From contig NC_134031.1 of the NCBI RefSeq assembly GCF_964204645.1, positions 6,014,001-6,078,000 on the forward strand: a stretch of DNA of 64,000 nucleotides, in the 5' to 3' direction. This document shows, one piece after another, positions 9,026 to 64,000 of the stretch. Under the pieces are notes generated by a model that was not told the origin of the DNA, searched no databases, and was given only the letters and a program-made list of their open reading frames with translations. Within the stretch, counting starts at the first letter, position 1, and every line of letters begins with the position of its first letter. A program made the translations under genes and the position numbers. This DNA comes from Tubulanus polymorphus (Eukaryota; Animalia; Nemertea).

Positions 9026-9214
9026 TTAGTTGTATTTGTAAAACGTTTTTCACCATCATCATCACCACCTTCACCCGGTAGTTTAGTCATCGGTAGGTAT
9101 ACAGCACCGTGCACAATACTAGGAATTGATGTTTTTGCAGTAGACATATTCGGTTTTGAAATATTGTTTAGGGCTATTATTATCATTATCATTATCAACG
9201 GTAATAAAATATAT

Positions 9215-10015
9215 AAAGAGTCATCTTTATATAGTCGTAGTAAAATTACATTAAGGGTAATCTTCACATAAAGAGTCATCTTTGTATAGTCGTAGTAAAA
9301 ACAGTTTAAGAGTCATCTTTATATAATCGTAGCAAAAAAATAAATAAAGAGTCATCTTTATATAGTCATAGTAAAATTACATGATAAGTCAACTTCATAT
9401 AGTCGTAGCAAAAATATATATATAAAGAGTCATCTTTATATAGTCGTAGTAAAATTACATAAAGAGTCATCTTTATATAGTCGTAGCAAAAACACTTAAA
9501 GAGTCATCTTAATATAATTGTAGTAAAATTACATAAAGAGTCATCTTTATATAGTCATAGCAAAATTACATTAAGAGTCATCTTTATATAGTCATAGCAA
9601 AACAATATATATAAAGAGTCATCTTTATATAGTCGTAGTGAAATTACATAAAGAGTCATCTTTATATAGTCATAGCAAAAACACTTAAAGAGTCATCTTA
9701 ATATAATCATAGTAAAACTACATTAAGAGTTAAGAGTCATCTTCATATAGTCATAGCCAAAAATACATTAAGAGTCATCTTTATATAGTGATAGTAAAAC
9801 TACATAAAGAGTCATCTTTATATAGTGATAGTAAAACTACATTAAGAGTCATCTTTATATAGTGATAGTAAAACTACATTAAGAGTCATCTTTATATAGT
9901 CGTAGCCAAAAAATACATGAAGAGTCATCTTTATCATCTTTATGTAGTGATAGTAAAATTACATTAATAGTCATCTTTATATAATTGTCGGAAAAATACA
10001 TAGAGTCATCTTTAT
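9215..10015. repeat. minisatellite, ~37-bp unit, ~21 copies
   Basis: AAGAGTCATCTTTATATAGTCGTAGTAAAATTACAT. Confidence 0.95.
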
Positions 10016-10949
10016 AAGTATTTTTTAAGCGGAAGACGTCATCTCGATACTGATTGATGGTGTTTATTATTAACTTGACTTCCGTCTATGAGCGATTACC
10101 GAGAGGTATCTCATTATCTCTCAGAGACGTTTCATTTTAAGACGTTGATTTACTCGATACGTCGAACTGTCTGAAAGCGAATGAAATCAAACCGTCGATG
10201 TAATGAAAAAAACTAGATGAGAATTTGAATAATGGGCCATTTTCAGAAACTCTGGTCCGTAGAATTGGGCCGAAATGTCAATTTCTTCTCCAGTTATTCA
10301 TTATATATTGTGGATTTTTACTTCATTTATATTGGACAGTCACTAATTGTCTATGGAAACCTATGTGAAGGCCACTATATTCTTCTGACCATTGGTATAG
10401 ACGTTTGTGATGACATATGATGACACTACATATATTATCGTTGTCGGTTAGGTTTGAATGCCATCGAAATGATGATAGTGGGCGACTCCGAGAACATACA
10501 CGGTAATCGCTGCCATCCTTTTCTCTAGCGGGTGGCTCCAGGTGGACAGCGGTGGTTATGGAATCAGCTACTAGAATTTCCTCATTGTGTGTCTGGTTTG
10601 TTGTGATGAGACAAACCTTCTTCGAACGATTCCATTGCGCCTCTTCAGCGGTAACAACTGTTGAACGCTGTTTACTGGATCAAATACTTGACGACTGATT
10701 TCGTTGTTATTGGCAACTGCATCTTCCCCCTCTGTTGCAGCCCTGAGTTCACCACTGTGTCGCTGGTTAGTTCTCGTTATGTGAGATGATAATGGGCTTT
10801 TGACTTTGTTTTGTTTGATATCTTCTTGAGGATATGAAAATATCCCCACTTACATGAAATAATATGGATCTCGCTCCATACTATACGTAGCTGAAGCAAT
10901 TTACGTGAGTCTGACCACAGCTAAAAAAATGGTGCAGTCACAGTGTGTG

Positions 10950-11505
10950 GTGCACTTGTTGCTAGTATAGGTTGGACACATTGTACTTGCTGCCAGTGCG
11001 TGGCGTACTTGTCCGCTAGTGTGGGTTGGACACAGTGTACTTGTCACCGGTGTGCGGCGTACTTGTTGCTAGTGTGGGTTGGACACAGTGTACTTGTTGC
11101 CAATGTGCGACGTACTTGTCGCTAGTGTGGGTTGGACACAGTGTCCTTGTCGCCGGTGTGCGGTGTACTTGTCCGCTAGTGTGGGTTGGACACAGTGTAC
11201 TTGTCGCCGGTGTGCGGCATACTTGTCGCTAGTATAGGTTGGACACAGTGTACTTGTCGCCGGTGTGCGGCGTACTTGTCGCTAGTGTGGGTTGGACACA
11301 GTGTCCTTGTCGCCGGTGTGCGGCTTACTTGTCGCTAGTGTGGGTTGGACACAGTGTACTTGTTGCCAATGTGCGACGTACTTGTCGCTAGTGTGGGTTG
11401 GACATAGTGTACTTGTGGCCGGTGTGCGGCGTACTTGTTGCTAGTGTGGGTTGGACACAGTGTACTTGTCGCATGTGTGTGGTGCACTTGTTGTTAGTGT
11501 GTGGT
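10950..11505. repeat. minisatellite, ~53-bp unit, ~10 copies
   Basis: GTACTTGTCGCTAGTGTGGGTTGGACACAGTGTACTTGTCGCCGGTGTGCGGC. Confidence 0.95.
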
Positions 11506-14500
11506 GGGCTTAATAAGTTAACTGGGTAAGACAACTGTACCAGCCAATCATCGATAACCAAAATAATTATCAGCAGACTTTATGACGACCCAGCCAATCA
11601 TATCAATTATTCTAGGTCACCTGACCAAGGAACCACCTAGAAGACCTGATCAAGTGGCAGCAAGAAACTACCATAGTGAAAGCTGGGGAACATGTTTCTG
11701 TCTCTTGCTTCCGTGTGCTTTAGGCTTCAGGGCCCAGTTGTTCGGTCATGGCTGTAACTTAAAACATGGTCTAAAGTCTTTAGACTGGTCTCAGGTTGTT
11801 AAATTAGCTATCGAACGTAGACGGTTTTAGACTATAGTCTTAGCGATGATTGCGAATCTGGCTCCAGGTTGATGGCGCGTTGTCTGGTTGGAGTTGATTG
11901 AAGAGACCGCGGTATCAACGATGCGATCTCTCGATCGTGTCGGCGTTCCTGCGCGGCGGCGTTCCCGCTTGCCACTGAGATGGATGTCAGCGATTCACGA
12001 GAAAATAAGACCGTAAACTCGATCTTACACGAGGATTACTGTATTGACCGTGTTATTGATTGAGTGCGCGTTTTCCCCGTCTGCGAGACTCCTTCCGCAA
12101 ACTCCGCGATTATAACCGCAGATAATAAGCCTGTCACCGCAACACCCCCTCGTGACCACGATCAAAATACACCAATTGACTCTCGTATGAAGCTTCAGGC
12201 GGTTCTTTCATTATCTTCTGGATTATGGATTTGACGAACTTGAAATGATGGGGGAGGGGAAAAAATCTTTTTTTTTAGGTCATTTCGGATAATGTCTGTG
12301 CACCGCGATTTTTTTGTATGCGATGTCTAAAGATGATACGGCAATGGAAAAAAATATTAAACCTCATTCTTTTTTTCCATATCTTTGTTTAAAATTGAGG
12401 GGGCACTGAAAATAAATTATCGTTATACCTAGTTTCCACGATCAAGGATTTCAGGCCTATAGCAAATAATTTCTAATGAACAGGTCCTCATTCCAAAAAT
12501 GGCAACCCTAAAGGCCATTTTTAGGCAATGCTGATTGGACGAATAGAATGTGCTGAAATATTTGAGAAAGAATTTTTAAAAAAACCATTTTGGTCGAATT
12601 TTTCACCAGGAGTGATTTAGCACGTGGGAATGACGTGTATTGTTTCCCAATCAAAACTAATCACTAATAACATCAATACGCCACGATGCGGTGTACTAGC
12701 AGTCCATCACCGATTTATACACCGTACTGCGGTGTAGACACACTGAAAGGGTTAAACCTGTCCATTGAACTATGCACTTTGAAAAATAAAATCCTCTATG
12801 AATTATTGCTTCCAATCGATCAATGAAGGACAATATTTTTATTCATGACGAGATTTACTGAATAATCTCGCTGCTCGTCGCGGCCTAAGTGCGATGTTAC
12901 GCAGCTCGGAAATGTTATTCCGATGAATGAATTTCTCTGATGTGTTGCACCTTCCGACCTCTCTACAGGTATATCGGTATCCGCCAATGATAACATCTTT
13001 CATCTTTCACTGCTGGTTCGCGTGGTTGAATGCCGGTACCGGATACCCCGCTTCTGCCAGCGCTGCTGCTGATGCTGCTGGTGCTAGTACTCTATAGTGA
13101 AAGCTGTTACAGCAACTATTCATACAGCGAATGATGTCATCTTGACTTTCTGGGAATGAAATCTCATGCTCTGATTCATATGTGTATACGCGTACTGGTT
13201 TCGAATCCTGTATCCTGGAGGATTCATTTCCCCATTATTACTCTCCTATCTTGAATGAGGTATATATCCTGGAGGATCCAGTGTAAGAGTAATATTTCAG
13301 ATATATGAGAAAGATGGGTGGGACCCAAACTTGTATCATGTATCCTGGTGATGGTTTCATGTATCCTGGTGATGGTTTCATGAAAATGTTTAAGCTTAAA
13401 ACGGTTAAGTTAATTGAATTGTTTTCCTCATTGAAAACATGAAGTAACCAATGGCAATTACACCATAAATTTTAGTTAAACTTTTTCGTGAAACCAGACC
13501 CTGGAGATGGTAACTGAATGGCAAAAAGCCCTCTGCGCCTCAAAGGAAGTCTAACTTAATCTTGGAGTATTGCCAAACCCTCGCAGGACAGAGTCGTCTG
13601 CTACTGATGAAGGTAGTGGTTCCTGGAAAGGATTCCTAGTACAGGTTCCCTGATTCCTTTTAAACTCACAGAAAATGCGGTTAAAGGTGCTTGAAACTCC
13701 TTTCATTCGAGCAATATGCCCGAAACTCCTTAAAATCTAAATTTTGAGATATGCTGATTAGAAATGTCTGTAGTTAATAGTAGACTATACCTAAATCGGG
13801 ATAGTTAGAACTGGGATTTTTTTCTAATCAGAAACTGAGTTTATGTAGCGTAAATGATAAAAATTTGTTTTCAAAACCACTGAATTAACAGTTTACCGAG
13901 ATAAACATCGCCGATTTAGGATTAGTCTATACTGTAAGACTGGGATGAGAGTGATACAAAGGCTTCCTCGAAATTCAAAATTCTCTCCTTTAAAACTCCT
14001 TATATCCGGGAATAACTGATTCATGGGACCCGGTAATACGTTGGTAACCTTAAGTGCCGAGGATCGGGGAGAAATCCCTGTATACACGTTCGGGAAGAAA
14101 GAAGCATCGATTTAATGGTATTAACCTCCGAACAGTGCTTTTGACCAGAAAGGTTTAGTAGCCAACCGTACATTATTCGCGTCTAAAAATAATTTTTGAT
14201 TTTAATGGATATTTCGTTCCGTAAACATTTTTCGCAAAGTACTTTCTCCGCGCGCGCAAACTCTATCTACTAAATCTATGTCTAGACCAGCGGCATCAGT
14301 CAGGGTCAAGGTCGTCGAATATTTCCCCCAGGGATCTGTTGTTCAATGTTTTATCGGGGTAATAAAAATGATGTATCATTGAATCTCTCGGCCGACTGTA
14401 GTGTGTACTGTTTAAACCGCTATTCTGTCCACCGTGTGTTCTGTTCGCTGTACACGCGATCAATTCGATTTGAATATTCTATGTTCATTTCGCGTTCAAG

Positions 14501-21062: not shown

Positions 21063-42547
<21,485 letters not shown>

Positions 42548-46736: not shown

Positions 46737-47244
46737 AATAGCAAATATACATGATTCTATAATGCGTTTTGTTTTACGTCATGACTATATTCAATAAATC
46801 GTCGGCAGATTTAGTCTTGTTGACGCGCGGGTTGTTACAGTAGAAACCGCTTAATTCGGATCATTCAGGATCAGCAATCATCCCGTTTACTGGAAATCTG
46901 GATTTAAAAGTCATTTTCTTGTGTACTAGTGAACAAATGGACTAAATTGTCCAGTTCCACAATTCTGAGTTAAGACTTAACTCCGAGTTAACTCATTGAA
47001 AATGAACTAACTTTAACTCAGTTAACTCGAACTCACAACAACTGTGGAACTGGGTCCCTGATTAGCTCAAAATCCGGATTAAGCCGATCCGGATCTTTTC
47101 CAACACTCCCATAACTCGCTTCCACCAGGTGAAGATGGCCCTTTGATTTTTAATTTGCTGACATTTTATCTCCAAATTTAGTTTTTATCTTTTCTAATTT
47201 TAATATTTTATGTTCAATTTCTTTTGTAACATCGACTAATTTTT

Positions 47245-48493
47245 TAGCCCACTTGGGACTTAAGTCCCAGCGGGCTATTACGTTCACTTTTCGTCCGCCG
47301 TCCGTCCGTCCGTTCGTCCGTCCATAGACGGAATCCAGTTATTTTGGGAAGTCTTGATATTTGGGTTACACATGTATCTACCCTAGACACATCTTCAGCC
47401 CAAAAACTGGCCCTGTCAGATTCAAGATGGCCGAATGGCAGCCATTGTTGTTCACCAAAATCAGCACTTTTTACACATTTTTGAACTTTTTGAGGGAAAT
47501 TTTGAAGACGCTTTGATCAATTACCTTGATCTTTCGGATATATGTGAATTCCCCCAGGGCCCATCAGCATAACAAAAATTGGGTCGATCGGACTCAAGAT
47601 GGCCGTCCTATGACCTTTTTAGTGCCCAAAAATGTTAATTTTGGCCCAAATTCTGAGTCCTGTAGCTTCCTACTGGTTTATCATTTCTCATTGCAATTTG
47701 TGATGGGTATTCTTTGGAAAGGGATGTTTTATACTTGAGACAGGTATTTTTCATCAGCCAATTATGACGCAATTGGCGGCCATCTTGGTGTCAGCAGTAC
47801 TCATTCGTAAGTGGGAAAAAGTTTTTCCACATTATATTGATACCTAAGCGTATTTTGTTACCACAATCAATTAGAAAGTTGTAGCTCATAACGTGTTCTA
47901 TGATTGTGGTGAGTTTCAAGGTCATTGGTTTTTGTATATGGCCACCAGGGGGCGTTGAATAATGCAATATCTTAGTATTTCTATATTATATTCGTATCAA
48001 TGCATATTTTGTAACCACAATCAATTGCAAAGTTGTAGCTCATGACATCGTCTATGATTGTGGCAAGTTTTAAGGCCATTAGTTATTCTATATGGTCACC
48101 AGGGGGCGTTGAATAGTAGAATAATTTAGTATTTTCTTATTATATTGGTACCTAGGCATATTTTGTTACCATGATCAATTACAAAGTTATAGTTCTTGAC
48201 ATGTTCTATGATTGTGGTGAGTTTCGAGGTCATTGGGTTTTGAATATGGTCACCAGGGGGCGTTGAATGGTAGAATAACTTAGTATTTCCATATTAAAGT
48301 GGTAACGAGGCATATTTTGTTATCACAATCAATTACAAAATCGTAGCTGCTGACATGTTCTATGATTGTGTTGAGTTTCAAGGTTATTGGATTCTGTATA
48401 TGGTCACCAGGGGGCGTTGAATATTGAAATTGTTAGATTGTTGAGCATTTGGAACCACTTCCCAAGTGGGCATGGTGTCCCTGGACCCCTAGT
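47245..48493 (+). mobile_element. HINE/DINE-1-like element, second copy
   Basis: Colinear, highly similar to 32485-33749; inserted in a T-run; longer (GTCC)n. Confidence 0.85.
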
Positions 48494-49284: not shown

Positions 49285-50471
49285 TTACTACCGATGATAG
49301 GCGATTTAAAGACATGATAGGCGCGGATTTAGAACACACGATAGCCGATGAGAACACAAAGAACATATCGTATTGCTTTCTGAATATATTATTCAAAAAC
49401 AAAAAACAAACTATGATGTATTATTAATTCATTTAAGATTTAAGAATTTATGTTTGTCCGTTTACAAAAACAATATCGCCTTGTAAGTATAATAATAAAG
49501 ATGCAATGATTGTAACTTATTTGAAAACATTGAAAGAATTGTTTACAATTAATAACAAGAAACATAAAAGTAACAAGATCAGGCAATGATACCAGTAGTA
49601 ATCATTATACCGGTTCTCATTATAATTAGGCCTTATATTATTAATTATATATATACCTATTATTAATTATACTCGCAATATAATTAATTCACAAAGTGCA
49701 CATACAATTTAAAAACATATCAGTCCAAGCTTATAAGTTGACATAGATAAATTAGACATATCGCAGTTGCGATAACACTGATTAATTAGTGAGACTTCAC
49801 ACGGCAGCTCGCGCCATTTTGCAGAGCTTCTCGGGACCTGTGGTGACAGGTCTGCATTAAAACTGATGAAATGAAGGAAAGCTTTAATTTATACGGTCTC
49901 TTTATAGTATTGAGTATAATATCAATTGCTAACCATAGATAGAGTTAATCTTAAGTTACTATAAATCAATAATTTTGCAACGCGTGGTTATTCTGCAGAG
50001 CCTTCGGGACCTATGGTGACAGGTCTGCATTAAAACTCATGAAAAAAAAACTTTACTTTTTAAGACCTCGATATAGCAATGAATACAATATCAATTGCTA
50101 ACCATAGATAGACTTAATCTTAAGTTACTATAAAACAATGATTATGAATGAAGCGAGACCTCAAACGGCCGCTCCGCGCCATTTTGCTGAGCTTCTCGGG
50201 ACCATTCGGGACCTGAGGCGCTTTTACGAAATTGAATCTGATTCGGTTTAGCTATATCCGATTCGATGTTGGAAAACGAAAGGATTAGTAAATCGAATCG
50301 TTTTTCGTAAATGAGTCGAATCAATTTATCAATTTAAAGGTCGCGATTCGAAAGAAAATGGGCGTCAATGGTGACCGAATTATTGATAGATGATGGCTGC
50401 AATTAGATGTCTTTAGCCCGCGGTCAAAGAGGACGCCATGTTGGATTTCACTGACTAAATCGCCACTTACT

Positions 50472-50692
50472 TACTGTCCCGTGAGAGGACCCGAATGAAC
50501 TAACTGTCCCGTGAGATGAACTGGTTTCAAATAATGTTCCGTGAGAGGGCCCGATTCAACACACTGTCCCATGAGAGGACCCGATTTTGAAATACTGTCC
50601 CGTGAGAGAACCCAATTCAACGCACTCTCCCGTGAGAGGACACTGTCCCGTGAGAGGGCTCGATTCAACACACTGTCCCGTGAGAGGACAGG
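50472..50692. repeat. ~30-bp minisatellite
   Basis: CACTGTCCCGTGAGAGGACCCGATTCAA units. Confidence 0.85.
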
Positions 50693-51551: not shown

Positions 51552-54500
51552 CTGAAATAATAAAATTACGAATAAATTTCGATTATTAACATGTTCTTAA
51601 CATTACTTTGAGTGTATTTAGTAAACAATCGAGTGCAGTTACTTTCGACATTGGCCACAGAAAAATGAAGCAAACAAACAACAATAACACAGTCAATTTT
51701 TGTATTGTACAAGTGCTTATATTTAATTGCATGCCCGCGGGTCTACTGAATGAAAAAACTTAAGAAATAATTTAGAAATTTAGAAATAAGTTGCTCCCCA
51801 AAACCTATAAAATCAAACTACATCGACTCATTTAATCGAAACTGAAACAATCATTTTTGCTATTTTCACGCTTCCTCGAAATGAAGTCAAAGGAAACGAA
51901 CCTGGCACTATTTTTGTCATCGTAAATGTGGTTATCATTTCGTTCAAAATGGTGTTTAAATTAAGTTCATCGAGCAATGGACTGCAGAGCTAATTGGAAT
52001 TCAATCAAAACTTATGTTTCAAAAAGGAGGAGTGTGAAAATTGTCACAGCAATGGGGACCTCGAGGGACCGCCACAAAATGGCGCCTAGAAACTGGAAAC
52101 TTCTCTATTGCGGTGACTTATTCGTGGAAAGTTTCTTTACTTCTCGGCAACTCACCTTGACACGGCGGTGTGGAACATCTTATTGCATTCGTAGTATAAC
52201 CCTCACAATCTTTTCCATTTCCAGATGGACTTGGGTTGGTACACGTTCTAGTGCGTTTCAGAATCCCTCCACCGCATGATCTGGAACACTGGCTCCACGG
52301 ACCCCAGTCGCTCAAGCCGCCATCGATGTCTATTGGAAATAGAAAACATCAAGAAAATAGTAATCAACTTGCTGTTACACATAATAAAACGTTAGGTCCT
52401 GTGTCAAAACAAGGTTCTGGAACACTGACTCCGCGTGATGCACCCCAGTCGCTTAAGAAATTCAAAAATACCAATCAGTTAAATATACTGTATTTGCTAT
52501 ACATAATAAAAACGTAGCCTATGTTAAAGAAAAATCTCTAGTTCAGTGCAGCAGTCACGCTATAGTCAATCATTGTAGAATCTGAGCCCAATTCTGTGTC
52601 ATTTTGAATTGTCAAATCAAAAATTGACAGGCCGGGGTCCAGAATAAGAGAAGAGGCATTTTGTCGGATAAAGCAGGCACAGGCCTCTATTGGGGTTTTG
52701 CCTGACTTCCGCCCTAAGTTGAGGTAGGCCACTAGTCTTTGAATTAAGCCAATTAGATGCGCTGATTTTCACCAGCCACATCGCTATGCATCTAGTTGGC
52801 TAGATTTATAGACTCTAGGGCACCTAGTGGCAACCTATCTGCCCACGAAATCTTGGGCAATGTAATACACAAATGAAGGGTTTGTGTTGTTGGCGTGAGC
52901 CTCGGCGGGCGGTTATCAAATCCTGGCAAGCGAGGATGGGTAAACCATACAGCTGCGTACAAGGAGGGGTGTGAAAATGGAGGATTTATGCGTTTGTATG
53001 TGGATGGTTTGGTTGCCGCCCACCGAGTTTACATCTAATAAAACCTTGGCTGCAAACCCTCCATTGATCTATTACACCGCCAAAAATGTCTTGGGCCACC
53101 AGTCTAAATATCTAGCAAATATGATTCTTTGAATTGATAATAAGTAATGTGAAATACAACGTATCTGATAAGTTTAGCTAGATATCGACTGGTGGCCGCT
53201 GAGCTGTCCGCCCAAAAAGATTTGATGGTTCCCCTTCTCTGGTTATCAATGTATACAGATAATAGTATCAGAATGAATTGTTTTTTCAACGACTGTGGAT
53301 TTTGGTCATGCACTTATGAAATATTGATTGATATCAGTATCTACCGGTCATTATCGTAACGGCTTATTCGTCGTCAAAGATGCTCATATAGCGTGGCTTT
53401 TGCTGAAATACTCACCGGGACACGATGCCTGTGTACATTGTGACGTTTCAGTCTCGATGCTAACTGGAATACCAGACCCTTTTAGTGGGCAGGAGAGGCC
53501 ACCATTTGATGGCGGCGGATTGTTACACATCCGTTGACGAGTTTTGACACCCGAACCACAGATTTTGGAACATGTAGACCAGCCGCCCCAAATACCCCAG
53601 TTTCCATTAACTACAAATGAAAAAGAATAATGAGAAATAACGAGCATCTTATAAATGATAATTTCGCGTACAATGAAGTGAGATACAAGTGTTTAAGCTA
53701 CGCTGGGTTCAAACGAATCCCTGCGAACAAAAACAGCCCCCGCCCTGCTCGTGGGTCTACTGAATGAAAAAACTTTATTTAGCTCCCCAAAACCTATAAA
53801 ATCAAACTATATGTTTTGGAACACTGGCTCCACGGACCCCAGTCGCTATAGCCGCCATCGATGTCTATTGGAATTAGAAAATATCATGAAAATAGTAATC
53901 AACTTGCTGCTATACATAATCAAACGTTAAGTCCTATGTCGAAACAAGGTTCTGGAACACTGACGACTCCGCGTGATGCACCCCAGTCGCTTAAGAAATT
54001 CGAAAATACCAATCAACTATACATATACTGTATTTGGTTTACATAACGAAGCGGAGCCTATTCAGAAGCGCATATTTTCGAAAAAAAAATGATTACTTAA
54101 ATGTCACCAAACGAATAGAAATAAGTTAAAATATTTTATTTCCATCTGTAAACATGTCACGTGATGCCAAAAATGGCGGACACATTTCTATATTTCTTTA
54201 GCGCTTATCAGGGCGACATACCAACAGTCACATCATCAACTGCACCGTTGACTTTGACCTCACAAAGAGTCAAAGGGTCACCGCTTTCTGATCTAATAGC
54301 CACGTATCTTCCTTCCAATTTGGCCGGACATGTGAATTCAACAGTGGCGCCGGCACCAAGACTATCGGTGTTTGTGGAGCATACTTGACCGGGTGTGAAA
54401 GATGCTTGCTGGTCGAACGGAGTGGGAGACACCAGTATCTTGAAGTTACGAAGTCTCGAACCTTTAGGAATGAATGAGAAAGATTGAATATAAATGTAAT

Positions 54501-57500
54501 TACGAAACATGATATGTTGCCCATCAAAACTTCGAACTTGAACACTTGTTGCATCATCAATTCATTTCTAATCACAGCATAGTTCAAATCGAGCAAACCG
54601 GGTTTCAGATGGGCCACGTGGGTTCGACTGACGTTAGCTAGTCCACGGCTCCAATTTTTCAGTAAAAAGTCAAGGGCATTATACTTACTACAACAATCTA
54701 CGCGATTTACCAACGTAACGCTGCGAACTGTGTAAGGCTTTCCGAGATCGACCTTCCACCAGGTTATTGGTGCTGCCAACGTATGTGTACACGAGTTGCC
54801 AAAGTAGTCGGCGTTCGTGTCTCCATCGATCGCTCTCGCAGCGTCATCCGCGGGAGCTTTTGGATTCGAAGGGCTTTGTTCGACTGTCTTTCCTTTCAAA
54901 TCGATCTCGTCTGCGACAAAAATAACAGAAATTTCTTACAGTTTTGAAATTTTGTAATTTTGAAATTTCTCTATAATACACCGCACAAAAACAAAGCGAG
55001 GTAGCACAATTTTGTTGAACGATTTCATTTTTTCAAACAGTAGGCCATACAAAGAAATACCCTAGTTTCTCATCGGATGTTTTTCTAGAAAGTGACTAGG
55101 GCAGGCGAATTTTATTTTTTATTGCTTTTTTTAAATAAAAAAGCTCAACCTGAGACTTATAAAACAGAGGCGGAAGGGAAGTTTTTTTTTACAAATGTCA
55201 GTAATCTAAGTAGAACATATGCAAAAAAAACTTTATTTAGAAATAAGTAGCTCCCCAAAACCTATAAAATCAAACTATATCGACTCATTTAATCGATATT
55301 GAAACAATCATTTTTGCTATTTTCACGCTTCCTCGAAATGAAGTCAAAGGAAACGAACCGGCGCTGTTTTTGTCATCGTAAATGTGGATTACCAACCAGT
55401 ACGTCGAGGATGAGCATATAAACACCCGCAGAAAAGAAATTCCACTGTCGCACACTATACAGCTATGCGGGCGAGCGGGTTTTGATTTAAAAAAAAGACG
55501 ATTGATGCTTTACCGAAGCGGGCGAGCGCATTTGTCATTTTAATTTCTATTAAGGACTTCTTTCATGACGCGGGCGGCATTTGCCTTTCTTGAGAAACTA
55601 GGGTATCTCTTTGTGTGGCCTTATATCTGGGCTGATATTTGAGGTAAACGCAAACGATAAACAGCATATGAAAGAAGAGAATCTCAGCTATGGATTTTTC
55701 ATTAAATCATCCGTGCATAACTTCAAGCTTGAATGCACGATCTTCCACCAATAAGAATACTCGATTTTTGAATGCTGAAGAATGTGTCATTGAGCGGGTA
55801 CTACTCGACCATTTTAATTTGAAAAATTGTGTTCACAAGGATAAAGGATGTCGTTTATTTATCATCCCGTGAATTCCGTTGCACAAATCCGACCTACATG
55901 TTAACGGTGGCTCAATGTTCAGTATTTTCGACAACATTTTTTTAACTTTACCTAACTTTTTCGCTCAGTTTATCACGTGTGCGTGTGAATTGGTTAAATT
56001 TGAATACGAACCTGGTTTCGCGATACCAGTTTTAGTTCCCATCACGCGAACCTCGCAAAGAGTTAACTTATCACCGCTCGTGGACAACACAGTCACGTAA
56101 CGACCTGATTTTTTGCCGGAAGCGCACTTGTACTTTTTCACTTGCCCGGCGCTCGGGCCAGCGGGCGGCTCGGCGCAGACTGCTGCTTGGTTGCCATCTT
56201 TAGATCTTATCGGTTTGTCGGAGACGTATATTGTAAATTCTTTCAGGCCTAGAAAATAATACATCGAAAAACCGTAGTGAATAGGCTACACGTGATTTTA
56301 AAATTTACACAGAACTATATAGACTGATCAAGAACTATTGGATTGGTATCTTTAAGGCCTTCTAAAGCCTTAACTTGACCCAAGTCCTGTAGTTCCTAAG
56401 GTTTTGCACTTGACTTGAACTAGTTAATTTCGAACGTTTAAACCTTAGAAAGCTTAGCCCCCCCCCCTTAATTCTACTCCCCCTTAAGACTAGCACCAAC
56501 TTACTACAACATGAATTGGTGTCTTTAATCCGAAAGTCCAGATTCATGGAAAAGTAAAACTCAAATTGTTGGTTTAATTGCTATAATTGTTAATTCATGT
56601 TTTCAACGAGGACAACAATCAAAACTTTGGCTCAAACTATTTCATGTAGGCCCTGGGCCCTAACTAGACACAGTTCGGCAGTTTTTGGTCCGAGTTGAAT
56701 GAGTGCATTTTAAATGTATTAGCCCTAGAAATCTGAGCCCACTTTTTTGGTGGGACTGGCGCCGAAACTTACCGCAGCAATCTTTGCGGCTTGAAATCGC
56801 GACTGCGGTGACGTCATGGGTGGCTCCGAGATCAACACTCCACCAGTTGATATTGTTGCCTCCTGCAACCGGAAGATCTGTTTGGATACAACTTCCTCCA
56901 GACCAATTGGGATCGTTGTTATCGTCGACGGCTCGGCTGGACACGCCTCCTTCAGCGACACTACTCTGATAGGTCAGTTTCCCCGTTAAGTCTAACGAGT
57001 CTATGAAATTACATTACAGATTGAATCGTAATTATTCTTATGCTCAATTTCATTCCGAAAAATTTCTTTGTATTCGTACACGCCACGTTGCGGTTCATAC
57101 ACATTAAACTTACCGAATGGCTCGCGCACGATCACTTCGCACAGCGTCAAAACTCCAACTGTCGTCCGCACGACTATGACGTATCTTCCAGTCAGAGGTT
57201 TCGGACATTGGAAAGTTTTACGAGGTCCCATGGCAACGGCTTGCTGTTGGGCACATCTATCCCCGACGGGAATGTTGCTGTACACGGTTGGAACCGTTTT
57301 GGTTACATAAATGTCGAACGATTGAAGGCGCTCAGCTGAAAGTAAATAGCAGGAAATAAGGATAGTTTTGATAGAGATTAGCCGGCACTGGTGTGGAGGA
57401 TGCGTATACAGAATTTGAAAGATTAAAAACAAATTATATTCATCAGAAATTTACATCAAAATACTCAACGTTTCGAACTCTCATCGGTCAGAGACCATCG

Positions 57501-60500
57501 TCAGGGGCCAGTTTTACAGACTGGTAACAGTGGAACATCGTTATTACGAACTCGGAAATAACAATTCATCGCATAGAATTTCGTCGCAGGTAAGACATGG
57601 AAGTGGAACTTATTTCATGAGGGTGGAATTTTTAGTGTGAAGGTAAAACCTTTTATATAATGTCGAGTCGTGGGAGGTGGCACTCCCCTAGCAAAATCTT
57701 TGAAAATTAGATGCAAAGAGAAGCAATTCTTCACAACTTCTAGCATATTTCGCGTAAGAATTCTAATTTTTTAACCTAACCTTCTTTTGTAAATATCTTT
57801 GTTCATTGTGACATGTTTTATAACCAAAATTTCTCGATTTCACGCATGATTTTATTACGTTCACATTCTAATCTAATTCGACCTTTTCATCCTCTGTACT
57901 TTTTGTATTCTGTCACATTGTACACGATTGTCTAAGTTACAAAATATCAACCGTATTTATTCCAAATAAACTGAAATTGAAATCTTTTAGTTTGAAATAA
58001 GCGAGTGCATATTTTGAATGGAAATAACGAATGAAAAACTTTTATCAAGGTAATGTATTGAAATCGATGCTCAAATTATCTTCTTAGGGCCGGCAACTGA
58101 GCGGAACTTTGTCAATGAGCGGGAGCATGCGCTCCAACACCACCTAACCCACCCCGACCCCCCAAATACAGGCCTGGTTGCTTGACATAAAGAACGTTCG
58201 CCAGACGGTTATACTAACAGAATCGCAGACGATTGACCAACGTCACTTCCGATATCGGTAGTTCCTCGCTCAGATCTAACTGCCACCAGTCTCGATCTTT
58301 TCCGTCGGTGTGGGTGCAACTCTTTTTAGCGGTGTAATCCGAATCATCATCACCGTCGATAGCGAGCGACGCGTCGCCCTTAAACGCGGTCGAAATCTGC
58401 GTAGCAATCCTGCCGGAGGTGGTATCGACGACAACTAAAGTTAGAGATAAGAAAAAATTTTAAGTGAAATCGTCACGGAAAATATTCCAGAGATACTAAC
58501 GCCTAGTATAATACTGACGCCTTGAAAATTAACAAGTATATTGCTTAATATCGTAAGATATAACAAAAAGGGATACAAATTGTTGTAGAATATATGTTAT
58601 TCGGGATATCAATAAAGTTATTTTTCGAACATATCAATGATTTATGGTGGCTGATAAGGGCCATAGCGTAAAATTCCTGGTATGTAAATGAGGGCACCAG
58701 AATACCAGAACGCCAAAACGAAAAAAAAACATCAGATTTTCTCTGAAATCTCGTTTTGGCACGCCAAAACATAGAATATTCCGTTTTGGCGCGGTTATTT
58801 GCGTTTTGGCGCCCCCGTCAAAACAAGCCTTCAACCACAGTAAAATTATTTTTCAATTTGGTGCCTTGATCTTGTGTGTAATTTGCATAAATTTGAATAT
58901 ATAAAATTATTTTACGTGGTTGAAAGTTCGTTTTGGCGGGGGCGCCAAAATGAAAGTTCGTTTTGGCGGGGCACCAAAACGGAATTTCCTTTGTTTTGGC
59001 GCGCCAAAACGAACTTTAAGAGAAATTTCGACGTTTTTCGTTGTTTTGGCGGGGGGTCAAAACGGAATATTCTTTGTTTTGGCGCGCCAAAAAGAACTTT
59101 CAGAGAAAATTTGACGTTTTTTTCAATTTGGCGTTCTGGCGCCCTCATTTACATACCAGGAATTTTACGCTATGGCCCTTATCAGCCACCATAATGATTG
59201 AATTGAATTGACCGGTAACAAGTCTATCCTCGATATGTTGATGACGTATTGCGCGCATGTTCTCAAAAAATAATTGTGAAAATTGATCAAAAATGAAGGA
59301 TATGAAATCAATATATTTGTTTTCAGAAAAAACGTCAAAGTCGAAATGGTTCTCTTGAAACGCCGCTATTGATGACGCAGTGCACATCGACTCACACAGA
59401 ACATCTTTAAATATCTAAGCGACGCATTATACCAAGTATCAATGTATATAAACATTATTGCAACGGTTTTTATGACGTCATCAGCATTTGAAATATCGAT
59501 GCCATCTACTTGTAACATCTAATAATGACAATATAGTACTTACGTGGACAGGGTATTTTAGTAGCGCAGACCTCCTTCTCGACAGCAGGTCCTATTTTTC
59601 TACAGTCGGCTCCGCACGCGGTTGGTTTAGGGTTCGTGCAGGTTCTTGAGCGAGTCCTGTGTCCGGAGCCGCACGACCTGCTACAATCAGACCACGCGCC
59701 CCACAACGAATAACCACCGTTCACTTTTTCGAAAAATGAAATCAACAAAAATTTATTTTGGAATACGTTAAATCAAAAACATTACGTAAAATATATTACC
59801 TACAAAGTCGAACGCACGCGGCAAAACTCAATCAAAACGGCAAAACATTCTCAAAACGTTTCGAGTAAAAGTTTTTCCCGCAAACGATAAAAATGTTCAA
59901 CGCACACGACATAACTAAAACACATCATCAAAAACGTTTTTTCCTTGCCGTGTGCGTTGGGTTTGAATGACGATTATCTAGAAGTTAATGTATTCATCAA
60001 CACGTCTATCATGAAATTTTAGCGCAAACCCAAATTGGAAATAATGGTGTTCAACCTGAACAAAATTGGGAAACATAGGTTACAACAAATACTTATTTAA
60101 AATGAATTGAAGAAGCCGAGAATCACCGGCAAAAATCTGCATTTCATTTCCTTCAAAATGGTGTTTAAATTAAGTTCATCGAGCAATGGACTGCAGAGCT
60201 AATTGGAATGCAATCAGGACTTTTGTTTCAAAAAGGAGGAGTGTGAAAATTGTCACAACAATGAGGACCTCGAGGGACCGCCACAAAATGGCGCCTAGAA
60301 ACTGGAAACTTCTCTATTGCGGTGACTTATTCGTGGAAAGTTTCTTTACTTCTCGGCAACTCACCTTGACACGGATGTGTGGAACATTTTTCTACATTCC
60401 AATATTGACCAACACAAGCTTTTCCATTTCCAGATTGACTTGGATTGTTACACGTTCTAATGCGTGTACGAGTACCTCCACCGCATGTTCTGGTACACTG

Positions 60501-62579
60501 GTACCACGTACCCCAGTCGCTATAGCCGCCATCAATGTCTATTGGAAATAGAAAACATCATGAAAATAGTAATCAACTTGCTGTTACACATAATCAAACG
60601 TTAAGTCCTATGTCGAAACAAGGCTCTGGAACACTGACTCCGCGTGATGCACCCCAGTCGCTTAAGAAATTCAAAAATACCAATCAGTTAAATATACTGT
60701 ATTTGCTATACATAATAAAAACGTAGCCTATGTTAAAGAAAAGCCTCTAGTTCAGTGCAGCAGTCACGTTTTAGTCAATCATTGTAGAATCTGAGCCCAA
60801 TTCTGTGTCATTTTGAAATGCCAAATCAAAAATTGACAGGCCGGGGTCTAGAATAAGAGAAGAGGCATTTTGTCGGATAAAGCAGGCACAGGCCTCTATT
60901 GGGGTTTTGCCTGACTTCCGCCCTAAGTTGAGATAGATTTCTTGCGCGGACAGGTTGCCGCTAAGCGGCCACTAGTCTATGAATAAAGCCAATCAGCAGA
61001 TGTGTTGAGGCGCTTTTACGAAATTGAATCTGATTCGGTTATTAGCTAAATCTGATTCGATGTCGAAAACAGAAAGAATTAGTAAATCGGATCGTTTTTC
61101 GTAAATGAGTCGAATCAATTTATTATCAATTTAAAGGTCGCGATTCGAAAGAAAATGGGTGTCAATGGTGACCGAATTATTGATAGATGATTGTCTGCGA
61201 TAAATATCTTTAGCCCGCGGTCGAAGAGGACGCCATGTTGGATTTCACTGACTAAATCGCCACTAACTTGCTCGCCGAGCAAGTTAGTCGATTTAATAAA
61301 TCAATTTACTAAACCGCGTCCATAAACGAGTTGATTTACCAAATCGGATTCACTAAACCGCGTGCTGTAAACGTGAAACTTAAATCGATTTACAAAGATT
61401 CAGTTTCGTAAAAGCGCCTTTGTTTTTCACCAGCTACATCGCTCATCCTCGCTTGCCAGGGGTCCGGTATCACTCCCGAACTCGCTTCCACCAGCCCCCT
61501 GGCCTCACGAAGCGTTATTTCATTACTGGCGCTGTTGCGCGTGACGTCATATATCGATTTGCGAAATACTTCCTTGTTCAGTAAAACGTTCGCTGATTGG
61601 TCAATTTGACGGGAAACCAACAGAAGTCTACTGACGGTTTGTTACAAGCGCTGTGATTGGTACGACCGGATTCTGGTCGGCTAGTAACGACTCCAACGAC
61701 TCGTGAGGTCAAGGGGTTCGGGGAACAGCGAGCGTAGTACATCGATGCACATCGCTATCCATCCAGTTGGCTAGATATATAGACTGGTGAGCACCTAGTG
61801 GCAACCAAGAAATCTTGGGCAATATAATAGACAGATGAGGGGTTTGTGTTGTTGGCGTGAGCTTCGGCGGGCGGTTATCAAATCCTGGCAAGCGAGGATG
61901 GGTAAACCATACAGCTGCGTACAAGGAGGGTGTAAAAATGGAGGATTTATGCGTTTGTATGTGGATGGTTTGGTTGCCGCCCACCGAGTTCACATCTAAT
62001 AAAACCTTGGATGCAAACCCCCCATTGATCTATTACACCGCCAAAAATGCCTTGGGCCACCAGTCCAGCAAATATGATTCGTTGAATTGATAATAAGTTA
62101 TGTGAAGTACAACGCATCTGATAAGATTTGCTAGATATATAGACTGGTGGCCGCTGAGCGGCAAACTGTCCGCCCAAAAGGATTTGATGGAACCTTCCCC
62201 TTCTCTGGTTATCAATGTATACAAAAAATAGTATCAGAATAAATTGTTTTTTCAACAACTGTGCATTTTGGTCATTAACTTATGAAATACTGATTGATAT
62301 CAGTATCTACCGGTCATTATTGTAACGGTTTATACGGCGTCAAAGATGTCCGGATAGCGTGGCTTTTGCTGAAATACTCACCGGAACACGGCGCCTGTGT
62401 ACATTGTGACCTTTCAGTCTCGAGGGTACCTCGCTCACCATTTAGTATGCCTAGTAGACAGGAGATGCCACCATTTGATGGCGGCGGATTGTTACACACC
62501 CGTTTACGAGTTTTGACACCCACACCACAGGATTTGGAACATGTAGACCAGCCGCCCCAAATACCCCAGTTTCCATTAA
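51544..62579 (-). CDS. modular extracellular protein: TSP1 x3 - F-type (fucose-binding/FTP) lectin x3 - TSP1 x2; 5'-incomplete
   Basis: Twelve frame-compatible exons, all introns phase 1 (2294 nt, about 764 aa): 62382-62579, 60365-60538, 59544-59723, 58219-58434, 57114-57335, 56773-57000, 56012-56248, 54689-54910, 54222-54461, 53416-53610, 52156-52329, 51544-51551. TSP1 WxxWxxCSxxCGxGxxxRxRxC and FTP AIDG..CTHT..WWxVDL..NRxDCC..RL..LTLCEV motifs. No TM segment before the stop. Confidence 0.88.
52156..52329 (-). CDS. TSP1 repeat exon (type B, duplicate of 60365-60538)
   Basis: Same splice sites as its paralogue; [58 protein letters not shown]. Confidence 0.87.
53416..53610 (-). CDS. TSP1 repeat exon (type A, duplicate of 62382-62579)
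   Basis: Same splice sites as its paralogue; [46 protein letters not shown]. Confidence 0.87.
53794..53864 (-). pseudogene. truncated third copy of the type-B TSP1 exon
   Basis: Intact acceptor, then [18 protein letters not shown], a deletion junction and TAG at 53794-53796. Confidence 0.75.
54222..54461 (-). CDS. F-type lectin domain 3, second half
   Basis: cctaaAG|GT..TTG|GTatg; [32 protein letters not shown]. Confidence 0.87.
54689..54910 (-). CDS. F-type lectin domain 3, first half
   Basis: gtcgcAG|AC..GTA|GTaagt; [44 protein letters not shown]. Confidence 0.9.
55043..55620. mobile_element. Harbinger-type non-autonomous element
   Basis: GGCCATACAAAGAAATACCCTAGTTTCTCA...TGAGAAACTAGGGTATCTCTTTGTGTGGCC|TTA. 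Confidence 0.72.
56012..56248 (-). CDS. F-type lectin domain 2, second half
   Basis: ttttctAG|GC..CAG|GTtcg; [31 protein letters not shown]. Confidence 0.85.
56773..57000 (-). CDS. F-type lectin domain 2, first half
   Basis: ttcatAG|AC..GCG|GTaagt; [41 protein letters not shown]. Confidence 0.88.
57114..57335 (-). CDS. F-type lectin domain 1, second half
   Basis: ctttcAG|CT..TCG|GTaagt; [34 protein letters not shown]. Confidence 0.88.
58219..58434 (-). CDS. F-type lectin domain 1, first half
   Basis: ctttAG|TT..TCT|GTtagt; [44 protein letters not shown] (not in the ORF track). Confidence 0.87.
58643..59193. mobile_element. long-TIR palindromic element rich in TTTTGGCG motifs
   Basis: Perfect 53-bp TIR, imperfect inverted match further inside, apparent 6-bp TSD ATGATT. 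Confidence 0.85.
59544..59723 (-). CDS. TSP1 repeat exon
   Basis: aaaAG|TG..CAC|GTaagt; [44 protein letters not shown]. Confidence 0.88.
60365..60538 (-). CDS. TSP1 repeat exon (type B)
   Basis: ccaatAG|AC..AAG|GTgagt; [58 protein letters not shown] (not in the ORF track). Confidence 0.88.
61008..61419. mobile_element. MITE absent from the paralogous duplicated intron
   Basis: AGGCGCTTTTACGAAA TIRs, TTG TSD; partial copy at about 50216-50468; empty site near 52762. Confidence 0.82.
61444..61748. mobile_element. insertion with 8-bp TSD
   Basis: ACATCGCT at 61436-61443 and 61749-61756, single at the empty site near 52779; 5' end CATCCTCGCTTGCCAGG is shared with the element at about 34998-35241. 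Confidence 0.72.
62382..62579 (-). CDS. TSP1 repeat exon (type A)
   Basis: tttgtAG|TT..CCG|GTgagt; [46 protein letters not shown]. Confidence 0.88.
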
Positions 62580-62796
62580 CTACAAATGAAAAAGAATAAT
62601 GAGAAATAACGAGCATCGTATTAGTGATAATTTTGCGTACAATGAAGTGAGATACAAGTGTTTACACTACGCTGGGTTCAAACTAGTTAGTTACCTAATC
62701 GTTGGTTGTAAGCTTTTTATAATCGGATGGGCTTATACCAATGTGGTTTGTGTGGTTTTTATGTGGTCTGTGAAAATGTCCGATCGTAACATTTGT

Positions 62797-63505
62797 GGCT
62801 TAAAATGGGGTCCCAAAATTAACTTTTTTTTCATATTACATGTAATTTGTAATAAAGTCCCTGGCTTCATTTAGCCTTATTTAGCATAGGCCTAAACTCA
62901 ATTCATTATACAGGCATACATCAAATAGCCTATGCATGTATGTTTATAATAAACAGTAACTTTCTGAAGAGAAATGAAAGGTTTTGCGCAAATCTGTAAT
63001 TCAATGTAATTCACTGTAATCGAGGTGTAATAAGCTGTAATAGCTGTAATAGCCAGATAAAACCAGTAATATTTGGCATAAATCTGTAATTCAATGTAAT
63101 TTGCTATAATTAAAGTGTAATAAGCTGTAATAGCTGAAATAACCATATAAAACCTAAGTAATCTGTAATTCAATGTAATTCACTGTAATTAAAGTGTAAT
63201 AAGCTGTAATGACTGTAATAACAGGTTTTACAGGTTGCCGGTTTTATCTGGTTATTACAGCTATTACAGCTTATTACACTTTAATTACAGCGAATTACAT
63301 TGAATTACAGATTTATGCCAAATATTACTAGGTAGTTTACATCAAGATCTTTATGTATTCTTTATATCATGTATATAGGGCTATATCATGAATTGAGTTT
63401 AGGCCTATGCATTGCGTATATCTGAGGCTAAATGAAGCCAGGGACTTTATTACAAATTACATGTAATATGGAAAAAAAGTTAATTTTGGGACCCCATTTT
63501 GAGCC
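62797..63505. mobile_element. foldback-type element with long inverted arms and internal tandem repeats
   Basis: GGCTTAAAATGGGGTCCCAAAATTAAC... / ...GTTAATTTTGGGACCCCATTTTGAGCC; internal CTGTAATTCAATGTAATT repeats in both orientations. Confidence 0.8.
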
Positions 63506-64000
63506 TTATATATCGTAAAACTAACGGTATATAGATCGTAAAACTAAACCACAGACTAGTTACTGACTAGGTTCAAACGAATCCCTGCGAACAAAAACAG
63601 CCCCCGCCCTGCCCGCGGGTCTACTGAATGAACCAGGGGGCAAGACGCATAGTCACGGCATCGACTTAAGACCAACTTGGTTTTGTAACCAATCTTACTA
63701 CTTAAGATCATTCTTAAAATCTATGACCACTTTCAAACTTATGTCACGACTGTATAACCAGACCACCCAAGTGCATTCTTTTAGAGAAGACCTTACCTTT
63801 TCTGAAAAACTTGTTTCATTTTACCGATTTGCGCAAACCCAATCGATATGAATTGTTCGGAAATATCAAATCATGTAATTAGCTACAAAAACACAATTGT
63901 CGCGAAGGATATGACTTCAGTGTGCTGAAACAGTCAAACACAGATTTGACGTTAAACCTACCCGCATTTTAAGCATTGCATTTAGACGTTTTCCAAATTT

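Follow-up and report, generated by a model that had tools for sequence, protein, structure and literature searches.

Replacement-rich divergence of duplicated TSP1 exons in a TSP1/F-type lectin gene of the spiralian Tubulanus polymorphus

A modular gene with a partial internal duplication

The window analysed here is a stretch of 64,000 nucleotides (nt) from the spiralian invertebrate Tubulanus polymorphus (contig 7, positions 6,014,001-6,078,000 of a 268-Mb assembly). It contains the greater part of a modular minus-strand gene, comprising thrombospondin type 1 (TSP1) exons in the order x, y, A, B and C, followed by three F-type lectin domains. Exons x and y lie just past the window end. Exons A and B are each present as a second, downstream copy, and the two copies of each exon differ far more than the introns that were duplicated with them, chiefly by amino acid replacement. 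The exons and domains of the gene are listed below by window position.

52156-52329, minus strand: TSP1 exon B1 (downstream copy), 174 nt, phase 1-1; PF00090 E=6.8e-12
60365-60538, minus strand: TSP1 exon B2 (upstream copy); PF00090 E=1.9e-12; positional counterpart of exon B in a paralogous gene on contig 10
53416-53610, minus strand: TSP1 exon A1 (downstream copy), 195 nt, phase 1-1; PF00090 E=2.7e-9
62382-62579, minus strand: TSP1 exon A2 (upstream copy), 198 nt; PF00090 E=6.2e-10
~59536-59706, minus strand: TSP1 exon C, present once and placed between B2 and the lectin exons; PF00090 E=8.8e-11; 90% identical to the contig-10 paralogue
54211-58459, minus strand: three F-type-lectin-like domains of two exons each; Pfam F5_F8_type_C_2 / F5_F8_type_C, with PDB matches
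58217-58459/57004-57450, 56663-57013/55968-56285 and 54600-54935/54211-54561, minus strand: open frames of the three lectin domains
54205-54225, minus strand: end of the last F-type-lectin exon, with a possible phase-1 donor (G/GTATGT) abutting the stop codons TGA TAA

All searches were run with single exons rather than with a joined spliced model; where A and B are pooled below, the pooling is a list of codon columns in the likelihood script. The four A and B copies scored 45.8 (B1), 47.6 (B2), 37.5 (A1) and 39.6 (A2) bits against a PF00090 cut-off of 21.6 and were therefore all assigned to TSP_1, as was exon C, likewise above the threshold. Every TSP1 exon is of phase 1-1, with identical, canonical AG/GT splice sites. 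Both exon B copies are 174 nt long and share the acceptor TTCTATTTCCAATAG, directly before the exon, and the donor GTGAGTTG, directly after it. Reading the exon coordinates in frame 1 gives stops, and that frame was rejected; the true one begins at exon base 3 (phase 1). The initial annotation, made from the sequence alone, had described the cysteines, framework tryptophans, splice sites and frame as preserved, and this was borne out: all six Cys, the WxxW tryptophans and the splice sites are the same in the two B copies. The six-Cys framework and WxxW are present in all A and B copies and correspond to the group-1 TSP1 repeat (TSR) framework, as in TSR2 and TSR3 of TSP-1. B1 was aligned without gaps to human TSP-1 TSR2 and TSR3 (1LSL). 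The first Trp position is occupied by Leu, Tyr or Phe, and one Arg of the RxR ladder has been lost in B1 (R23L).

A lectin exon matched FBP32 (3CQO, E=2.4e-15), eel agglutinin/fucolectin (1K12, 2.8e-8) and bacterial fucolectin-related proteins. Of the fucose-binding motif His...Arg-x-Asp-x4-Arg/Lys, the first part would correspond to CTHT in lectin domains 1 and 3 and the second, as read in domains 2 and 3, to R-x-DCC; the last basic residue falls beyond the splice junction when exons are read singly. Domain 2 (56663-57013, minus strand) carries CIQT, with Gln replacing the fucose-binding His of domains 1 and 3 and of solved fucolectins, and may be without fucose binding. No recognisable signal-peptide exon was found upstream in the region examined (window-equivalent 65.5-71 kb).

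The second copies of A and B belong to a duplicated block, which was delimited with the following associated elements.

51924-53768, minus strand: downstream block copy (introns plus A1 and B1), from self-BLAST and repeat families
60133-63632, minus strand: upstream block copy at the parental position, with two additional insertions of ~0.8-0.9 kb each
53811-54061, minus strand: B3, a truncated dead copy of exon B, comprising ~192-195 nt of upstream intron and the first 54-57 nt of the exon (exon part 53811-53864)
52416-52452, minus strand: relic of the exon-B 5' end inside the upstream intron (copy 2 at 60625-60661)
51935-52110, no strand assigned: dispersed repeat of ~170 nt, resembling a miniature inverted-repeat transposable element (MITE) or terminal inverted repeat, in the intron downstream of B1; a second copy lies at ~60144-60319 and another in the contig-10 paralogue

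Self-BLAST matched 51924-52727 to 60133-60936 (92.9% identity), 52777-53714 to 61748-62683 (88.6%) and 53703-53768 to 63567-63632 (95%). The downstream block is a patchwork (a B fragment, a 66-nt intron piece, A, then B) and sits behind a different exon. The exon B copies are separated by 8.2 kb with seven other exons, and a search of 880 nt around each copy returned no inverted repeats. RNA pairing that loops out exon B was rejected on the latter ground. A Dscam-like array of mutually exclusive exons, which calls for tandem alternatives next to each other and docking/selector RNA pairing, was rejected on both. Misassembly of alleles, or a false duplication, is a very improbable source of the two copies. 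The structure does rest on one assembly; against such an artefact stand the patchwork block behind a different exon, the two large indels, the 5% intron divergence from the upstream block and the lack of additional haplotig copies in the assembly.

Genome-wide, the closest relatives of exon B by amino acid identity are B2 (65%) and one contig-10 exon (60%); the rest are at 55% or below. The contig-10 gene has the identical exon order x, y, A, B, C and three lectin domains. It stops at its last lectin exon, with no A/B pair within the following 20 kb. It follows that the A1/B1 pair arose later, by a partial duplication specific to contig 7, and came to lie beyond the stop codon and polyA signal of the ancestral gene. 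The TGA TAA stop codons lie at 54205-54210 and AATAAA lies inside 54130-54143; 3' of the stop codons the minus-strand order is B3 (54061-53811), A1 (53416-53610) and B1 (52156-52329). It is plausible that the phase-1 donor before the stop codon could splice to A1. Across the whole gene, the contig-7 and contig-10 copies differ by a dS (silent substitutions per site) of 0.225 and a dN (replacements per site) of 0.11, with an omega (dN/dS) of 0.49. The TSP1 exons (omega 0.5-1.1) have evolved faster than most lectin exons (0.3-0.76).

Several repeats lie within the blocks. The A-B intron of the upstream copy has a ~0.8-kb insertion (60937-61747), one section of which (61006-61272) shares 91% identity with 50214-50475; the insertion probably represents a transposable element that entered after the duplication. 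The ~170-nt intron repeat occurs over 40 times in the genome, at 85-87% identity, and predates the split of the contig-7 and contig-10 genes. Several of its copies are arranged as inverted pairs separated by 0.3-1.6 kb, an arrangement suggestive of a DNA transposon's terminal repeat or of a MITE. The exon-B relic derives from an older partial duplication, ~90 nt upstream of the real exon, and its contig-10 copy retains the acceptor sequence.

Replacement changes in exons A and B

Exon B had been described in the initial annotation as differing at about 32 of 174 nt and 20 amino acids, with about 3 silent changes. The recount gave 32/174 differences (9 transitions, 23 transversions), with 20 of the 57 complete codons differing and three codons purely silent (1, 21 and 31). 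The adjacent introns, reported earlier as 3-4% diverged, differ at 14/398 positions upstream (3.5%) and 11/232 downstream (4.7%, the first 45 nt being identical), so that the earlier figures were off by a few bases only. Exon B is thus far more diverged than its adjacent introns (32/174 versus 25/630; Fisher p=3.3e-9). The exon A copies differ at 28/195 positions plus a 3-nt in-frame indel, compared with 74/1354 (5.5%) over all introns (p=3e-5). As exon A was co-duplicated and shows the same contrast, the effect is not confined to one exon by accident. The greater divergence of exons than of introns is accordingly confirmed as a real observation.

The changes are unevenly placed. In both exons they are densest in the stretch from Cys4 to Cys5 (codons 42-50 of B; codons 41-52 of A, including the indel), which we take to be strand C of the TSR fold from the alignment to TSP-1 TSR2/3 and the solved structure. 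These patches are ~50% different between copies, while the introns are 93-96% identical. The Arg-ladder strand is also affected (codons 22-26 of B, with R23L in B1), as is the first Trp position. In total, 20 residues vary in B and 19 in A. Changed bases are often adjacent, with 21 such pairs in 369 nt of exon versus 9 in 1354 nt of intron.

Replacement and silent divergence were estimated by the Nei-Gojobori method. Exon B gave a dN of 0.236 and a dS of 0.147 (omega 1.6; 95% bootstrap 0.66-6.0; Fisher p=0.48) and exon A a dN of 0.192 and a dS of 0.078 (omega 2.45). For A and B pooled, dN was 0.212 and dS 0.108 (omega 2.0; replacement versus silent, p=0.064). Against an intron divergence (K) of 0.055, the pooled dN was raised (p=1.6e-11), also when distal introns only were used (p=1.2e-7), whereas the pooled dS was not significantly so (p=0.14), with 5 purely silent codons for 4.6 expected. 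Replacement therefore exceeds the noncoding divergence of the same duplicates while the framework is kept, which is one of the marks of accelerated evolution in duplicates of the venom, gamete or immune type.

Silent differences that match the intron rate bear on an alternative raised in the initial annotation, namely gene conversion restricted to introns. The objection made there, that conversion would not explain the shortage of silent changes, stands. Nor was the outcome found that had been named as counting against selection, an omega not above 1 together with an exon dS far above intron divergence.

Codon models were fitted with our own GY94-type likelihood implementation (F3x4) on a three-taxon tree, using the contig-10 paralogue to polarise changes. 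Maximum likelihood omega on the post-duplication branches was 2.3 for B (p=0.11), 3.4 for A (p=0.026) and 2.7 for A and B pooled (p=0.008). The B1 branch by itself gave p=0.018, and the older branch had an omega of 0.8.

Controls, alternatives and other features of the window

Several points weigh against a selective explanation. Taken singly, exon B has an omega of 1.6 that is not significant. The tests rest on three sequences and 122 codons from one genome. Of the 42 differing codons, 15 are multi-hit; a model with a multinucleotide rate fitted better (p=3e-6) and lowered the pooled omega to 2.1 (p=0.10), and in single-hit codons (5 silent, 22 replacement) omega was ~1.3. The dN/dS test proposed in the initial annotation thus favoured selection for A and B pooled on the post-duplication branches, and did not do so for exon B alone or once multinucleotide change was allowed for. 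Multinucleotide mutations are a documented source of false positive-selection calls (bioRxiv 10.1101/165969), the artefact to which the fall of omega from 2.7 to 2.1 corresponds. In addition, A1 and B1 lie beyond the ancestral stop codon and AATAAA, and their sole route into the message is the candidate donor GTATGT. Finally, identical intron runs of 122 nt (P=0.037) and 118 nt (P=0.0004, the second-longest) adjoin exon B; since intron differences are uneven and the flanks are conserved, the introns near exon B are an imperfect neutral yardstick. The position of the downstream pair and the over-uniform intron tracts both weaken the case for selection.

The codon-model results are those on which an explanation by relaxed constraint plus multinucleotide mutation would draw. 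Redundant modules would drift with an omega near 1, tandem mutations would inflate the replacement count, and the introns would evolve more slowly than neutral sequence. The better fit of the multinucleotide model, its failure to reject omega=1, the omega of ~1.3 in single-hit codons and the published precedent for false positives all agree with it. We nevertheless regard it as quite unlikely. For omega to equal 1 under the multinucleotide model, the neutral distance would have to be 0.155 per site, roughly threefold intron K, and multi-hit triplets are fourfold more frequent in exons (15/42) than in introns (6/68; p=0.0009). Retention of the reading frame and framework also speaks against it. 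Neutral decay of the downstream pair was simulated; no stop arose and all Cys were retained in 1.5% of trials (P=0.015), and all Trp were retained as well in 0.3% (P=0.003). Neutral decay of the downstream pair is rejected.

The dead copy B3 provides a further control. In the exon part, unique changes numbered 3 in B1, 5 in B2 and 1 in B3; in the intron part they numbered 5, 1 and 14, respectively. For B1 and B2 together against B3, the ratio was 8:1 in the exon part and 6:14 in the intron part (Fisher p=0.005). Unconstrained B3 is thus the least changed in its exon part, which has remained nearly ancestral while B1 and B2 changed, and the acceleration is therefore not intrinsic to the exon sequence. 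This also counts against relaxed constraint. The exon-B relic inside the intron differs at 2 of 57 nt, which is the intron rate. Two other duplicated TSP1 segments of the same genome were used as controls; in one, exon and noncoding divergence were 2.4% and 11.4%, and in the other 8.2% and 7.3%. Long tandem arrays of TSP1 exons also occur on contig 10 (660,000-700,000), with a period of ~329 nt and 75-90% DNA identity between copies. There the protein is nearly identical between copies, the opposite of the behaviour of the A/B pair.

The intron runs noted above lend support to a different explanation, by which the exon copies are older than they appear. The introns, chiefly those beside exon B, would later have been homogenised by conversion or constrained by splicing, with convertants that touched the exon being purged. 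Besides the 118- and 122-nt identical runs on the flanks of exon B, it can call on the comparison with contig 10, where the ~100-nt flanks of exon B (52050-52155 and 52330-52440, against contig 10, 10296368-10296797) are ~6% diverged, compared with 15-25% for other introns and a gene-wide dS of 0.225. The dS of exon B is also nominally 2.7 times intron K (p=0.054). Near exon B, local conversion or some constraint on the flanks (such as the regulated splicing of a symmetric cassette exon) is likely, and the similarity of the flanks to contig 10 may reflect splicing-regulatory constraint or exon-sparing inter-chromosomal conversion. The greater age of the exons is itself unlikely. Identical tracts were found; a significant silent excess was not, the pooled dS and the count of purely silent codons both being compatible with the intron rate. 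The nonsynonymous excess persists when only distal introns serve as reference, and the explanation demands exact exon-sparing tracts on both sides of two exons, together with selection guarding the exon differences. The uniformity of the flanks sharpens the contrast at the exon borders and did not create the replacement excess.

The form of the patches raises the possibility of a mutational input limited to exons. Patches of 30-40 nt would be rewritten either by short-patch conversion, with another TSP1 exon or the spliced RNA or cDNA of a paralogue as donor, or by a switch of the type termed ASSET. Each exon has one ~50%-different patch, in the equivalent structural position and accompanied by an indel in the case of exon A; this and the excess of adjacent changes are both in keeping with such a process, and an analogous unexplained phenomenon is known from snake toxins (PMC2711939). 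Searches for a source were negative. Genome-wide DNA searches with each exon (BLAST, E up to 10, 268-Mb assembly) returned the four known copies only, and the hypervariable 26-mers had no second site in the assembly at up to 3 mismatches. Among local templates for the patches, the longest matches were 10-14 nt, within shuffled expectation. Ectopic conversion from other TSP1 exons was rejected on the genome-wide, 26-mer and local searches. Patches derived from a donor would also lift dS, so a pooled dS not significantly raised counts against them; more generally, an exon-limited input predicts silent divergence raised at least as much as replacement, which was not observed, and B3 is unaffected. 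We consider such an input, taken by itself, improbable, and infer that the changes are driven by selection and not by a mutational process limited to exons.

Elsewhere in the window, an intronless open reading frame (24414-25520, minus strand) encodes a protein of 361-368 amino acids that belongs to the 3-hydroxyisobutyrate/2-hydroxy-3-oxopropionate dehydrogenase family. Among named relatives, the best are from Lineus longissimus (nemertean, 65%) and Lingula anatina (brachiopod, 59%). Tandem-repeat blocks lie at 9201-10016, at 10941-11507 and at 33076-33679 with 47820-48423; the last pair has units of ~154 nt and lies within a 1.3-kb duplicated segment (32480-33749 matching 47240-48493). The 2 kb at 40001-42000 have 59% GC, and the window otherwise has 40%.

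Probable adaptive diversification of a putative recognition protein

We favour, at somewhat better than even, the view that, after an internal duplication, the copied TSP1 modules of a TSR/F-lectin recognition protein diversified adaptively. The contig-7 and contig-10 genes split first, and the patchwork A-B pair with its introns was then added behind the last lectin exon on contig 7. After this duplication, dated by an intron divergence of ~5%, A and B of both copies fixed replacements at about four times the intron and silent rate, concentrated in the Cys4-Cys5 stretch (strand C) and on the Arg-ladder strand, while the Cys/Trp framework and splice sites stayed constant. The most probable cause is positive, diversifying selection on the TSP1 binding surfaces, amounting to neo- or sub-functionalisation of the recognition protein, with the duplicated modules possibly used as alternative or extra modules. 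This assumes that the downstream A1/B1 pair is spliced into the message, presumably through the candidate donor, and that the protein is a secreted molecule for recognition of glycans or microbes. Diversifying selection, as put forward in the initial annotation, is supported in direction by the excess of nonsynonymous change, by a framework conserved beyond neutral expectation and by a dead copy that was not accelerated; formal dN/dS remains indecisive, and the adaptive reading is not yet proven.

Among known systems, gamete-recognition proteins in which replacement exceeds intron substitution include abalone lysin and the oyster sperm bindin, which is built of F-lectin repeats. The present gene resembles these in a dN above the noncoding rate, in being a spiralian protein with tandem F-type lectin domains, and in the diversification of repeated modules. 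It differs from oyster bindin in the module concerned: there the F-lectin repeat itself diversified, whereas here it is the TSP1 exons that diversify, the lectin exons being the more conserved (omega 0.3-0.76). A further parallel is with cassette exons that are alternatively spliced and evolve fast between conserved introns; such exons usually have lowered silent rates and an omega below 1. Exon B shares with them its symmetric phase 1-1, a length divisible by three, ~100 nt of conserved flanks (also in the paralogue) and a raised replacement rate. It is unlike them in a dN of four times the intron rate.

TSP1 repeats followed by lectin domains are also found in the Hydractinia rhamnospondins, which have eight TSRs and a C-terminal rhamnose-binding lectin, a putative role in immune recognition and diversity from gene duplication (PMC3269628, summary). 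Both have a TSR array before the lectin domain or domains and a family expanded by duplication. The rhamnospondins belong to another phylum and carry a rhamnose-binding rather than an F-type lectin, and a rate of exon over intron change is absent from the summary of that study. In the ASSET segment switch of snake toxins, exon segments are replaced by a mechanism that is unexplained (PMC2711939). As here, introns of recent duplicates are highly similar, coding exons are far diverged with the cysteine framework kept, and short surface segments are radically swapped on top of point replacements. The switch is characterised by short, nearly unrelated exon segments amid introns above 85% identity, with Cys kept; the ~50%-different patches of A and B match this, though descriptively only. 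The toxins are small, secreted proteins, whereas here a TSP1 repeat in a large lectin mosaic of a spiralian is concerned, with two exon pairs and three sequences read from the genome alone.

A bolder form of this likeness, which we hold to be rather unlikely, is that the TSP1 repeats are hypervariable specificity modules of a lectin-based recognition protein, whose strand-C patch is rewritten by an exon-restricted, ASSET-like germline process sparing introns and non-functional copies. If true, this would be a second, independent 'segment switch' beyond snake toxins, now in a spiralian.

TSP1 repeats are commonly viewed as conserved adhesive spacers. If adaptive diversification is not confirmed, the divergence described here would be ordinary fast drift following a partial duplication. 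If it is confirmed, the locus would be a compact natural experiment in which one exon is available as two live copies, a dead one and an older paralogue, introns included, a set that allows selection to be separated from mutation in a small disulfide-rich domain. The TSP1 repeats of this TSR/F-lectin mosaic would then join the few modules that outpace their introns, as in toxins, gamete-recognition and immune proteins, and would suggest that this gene pair, from a spiralian lineage that has received little study, serves in the recognition of glycans, microbes, gametes or prey.

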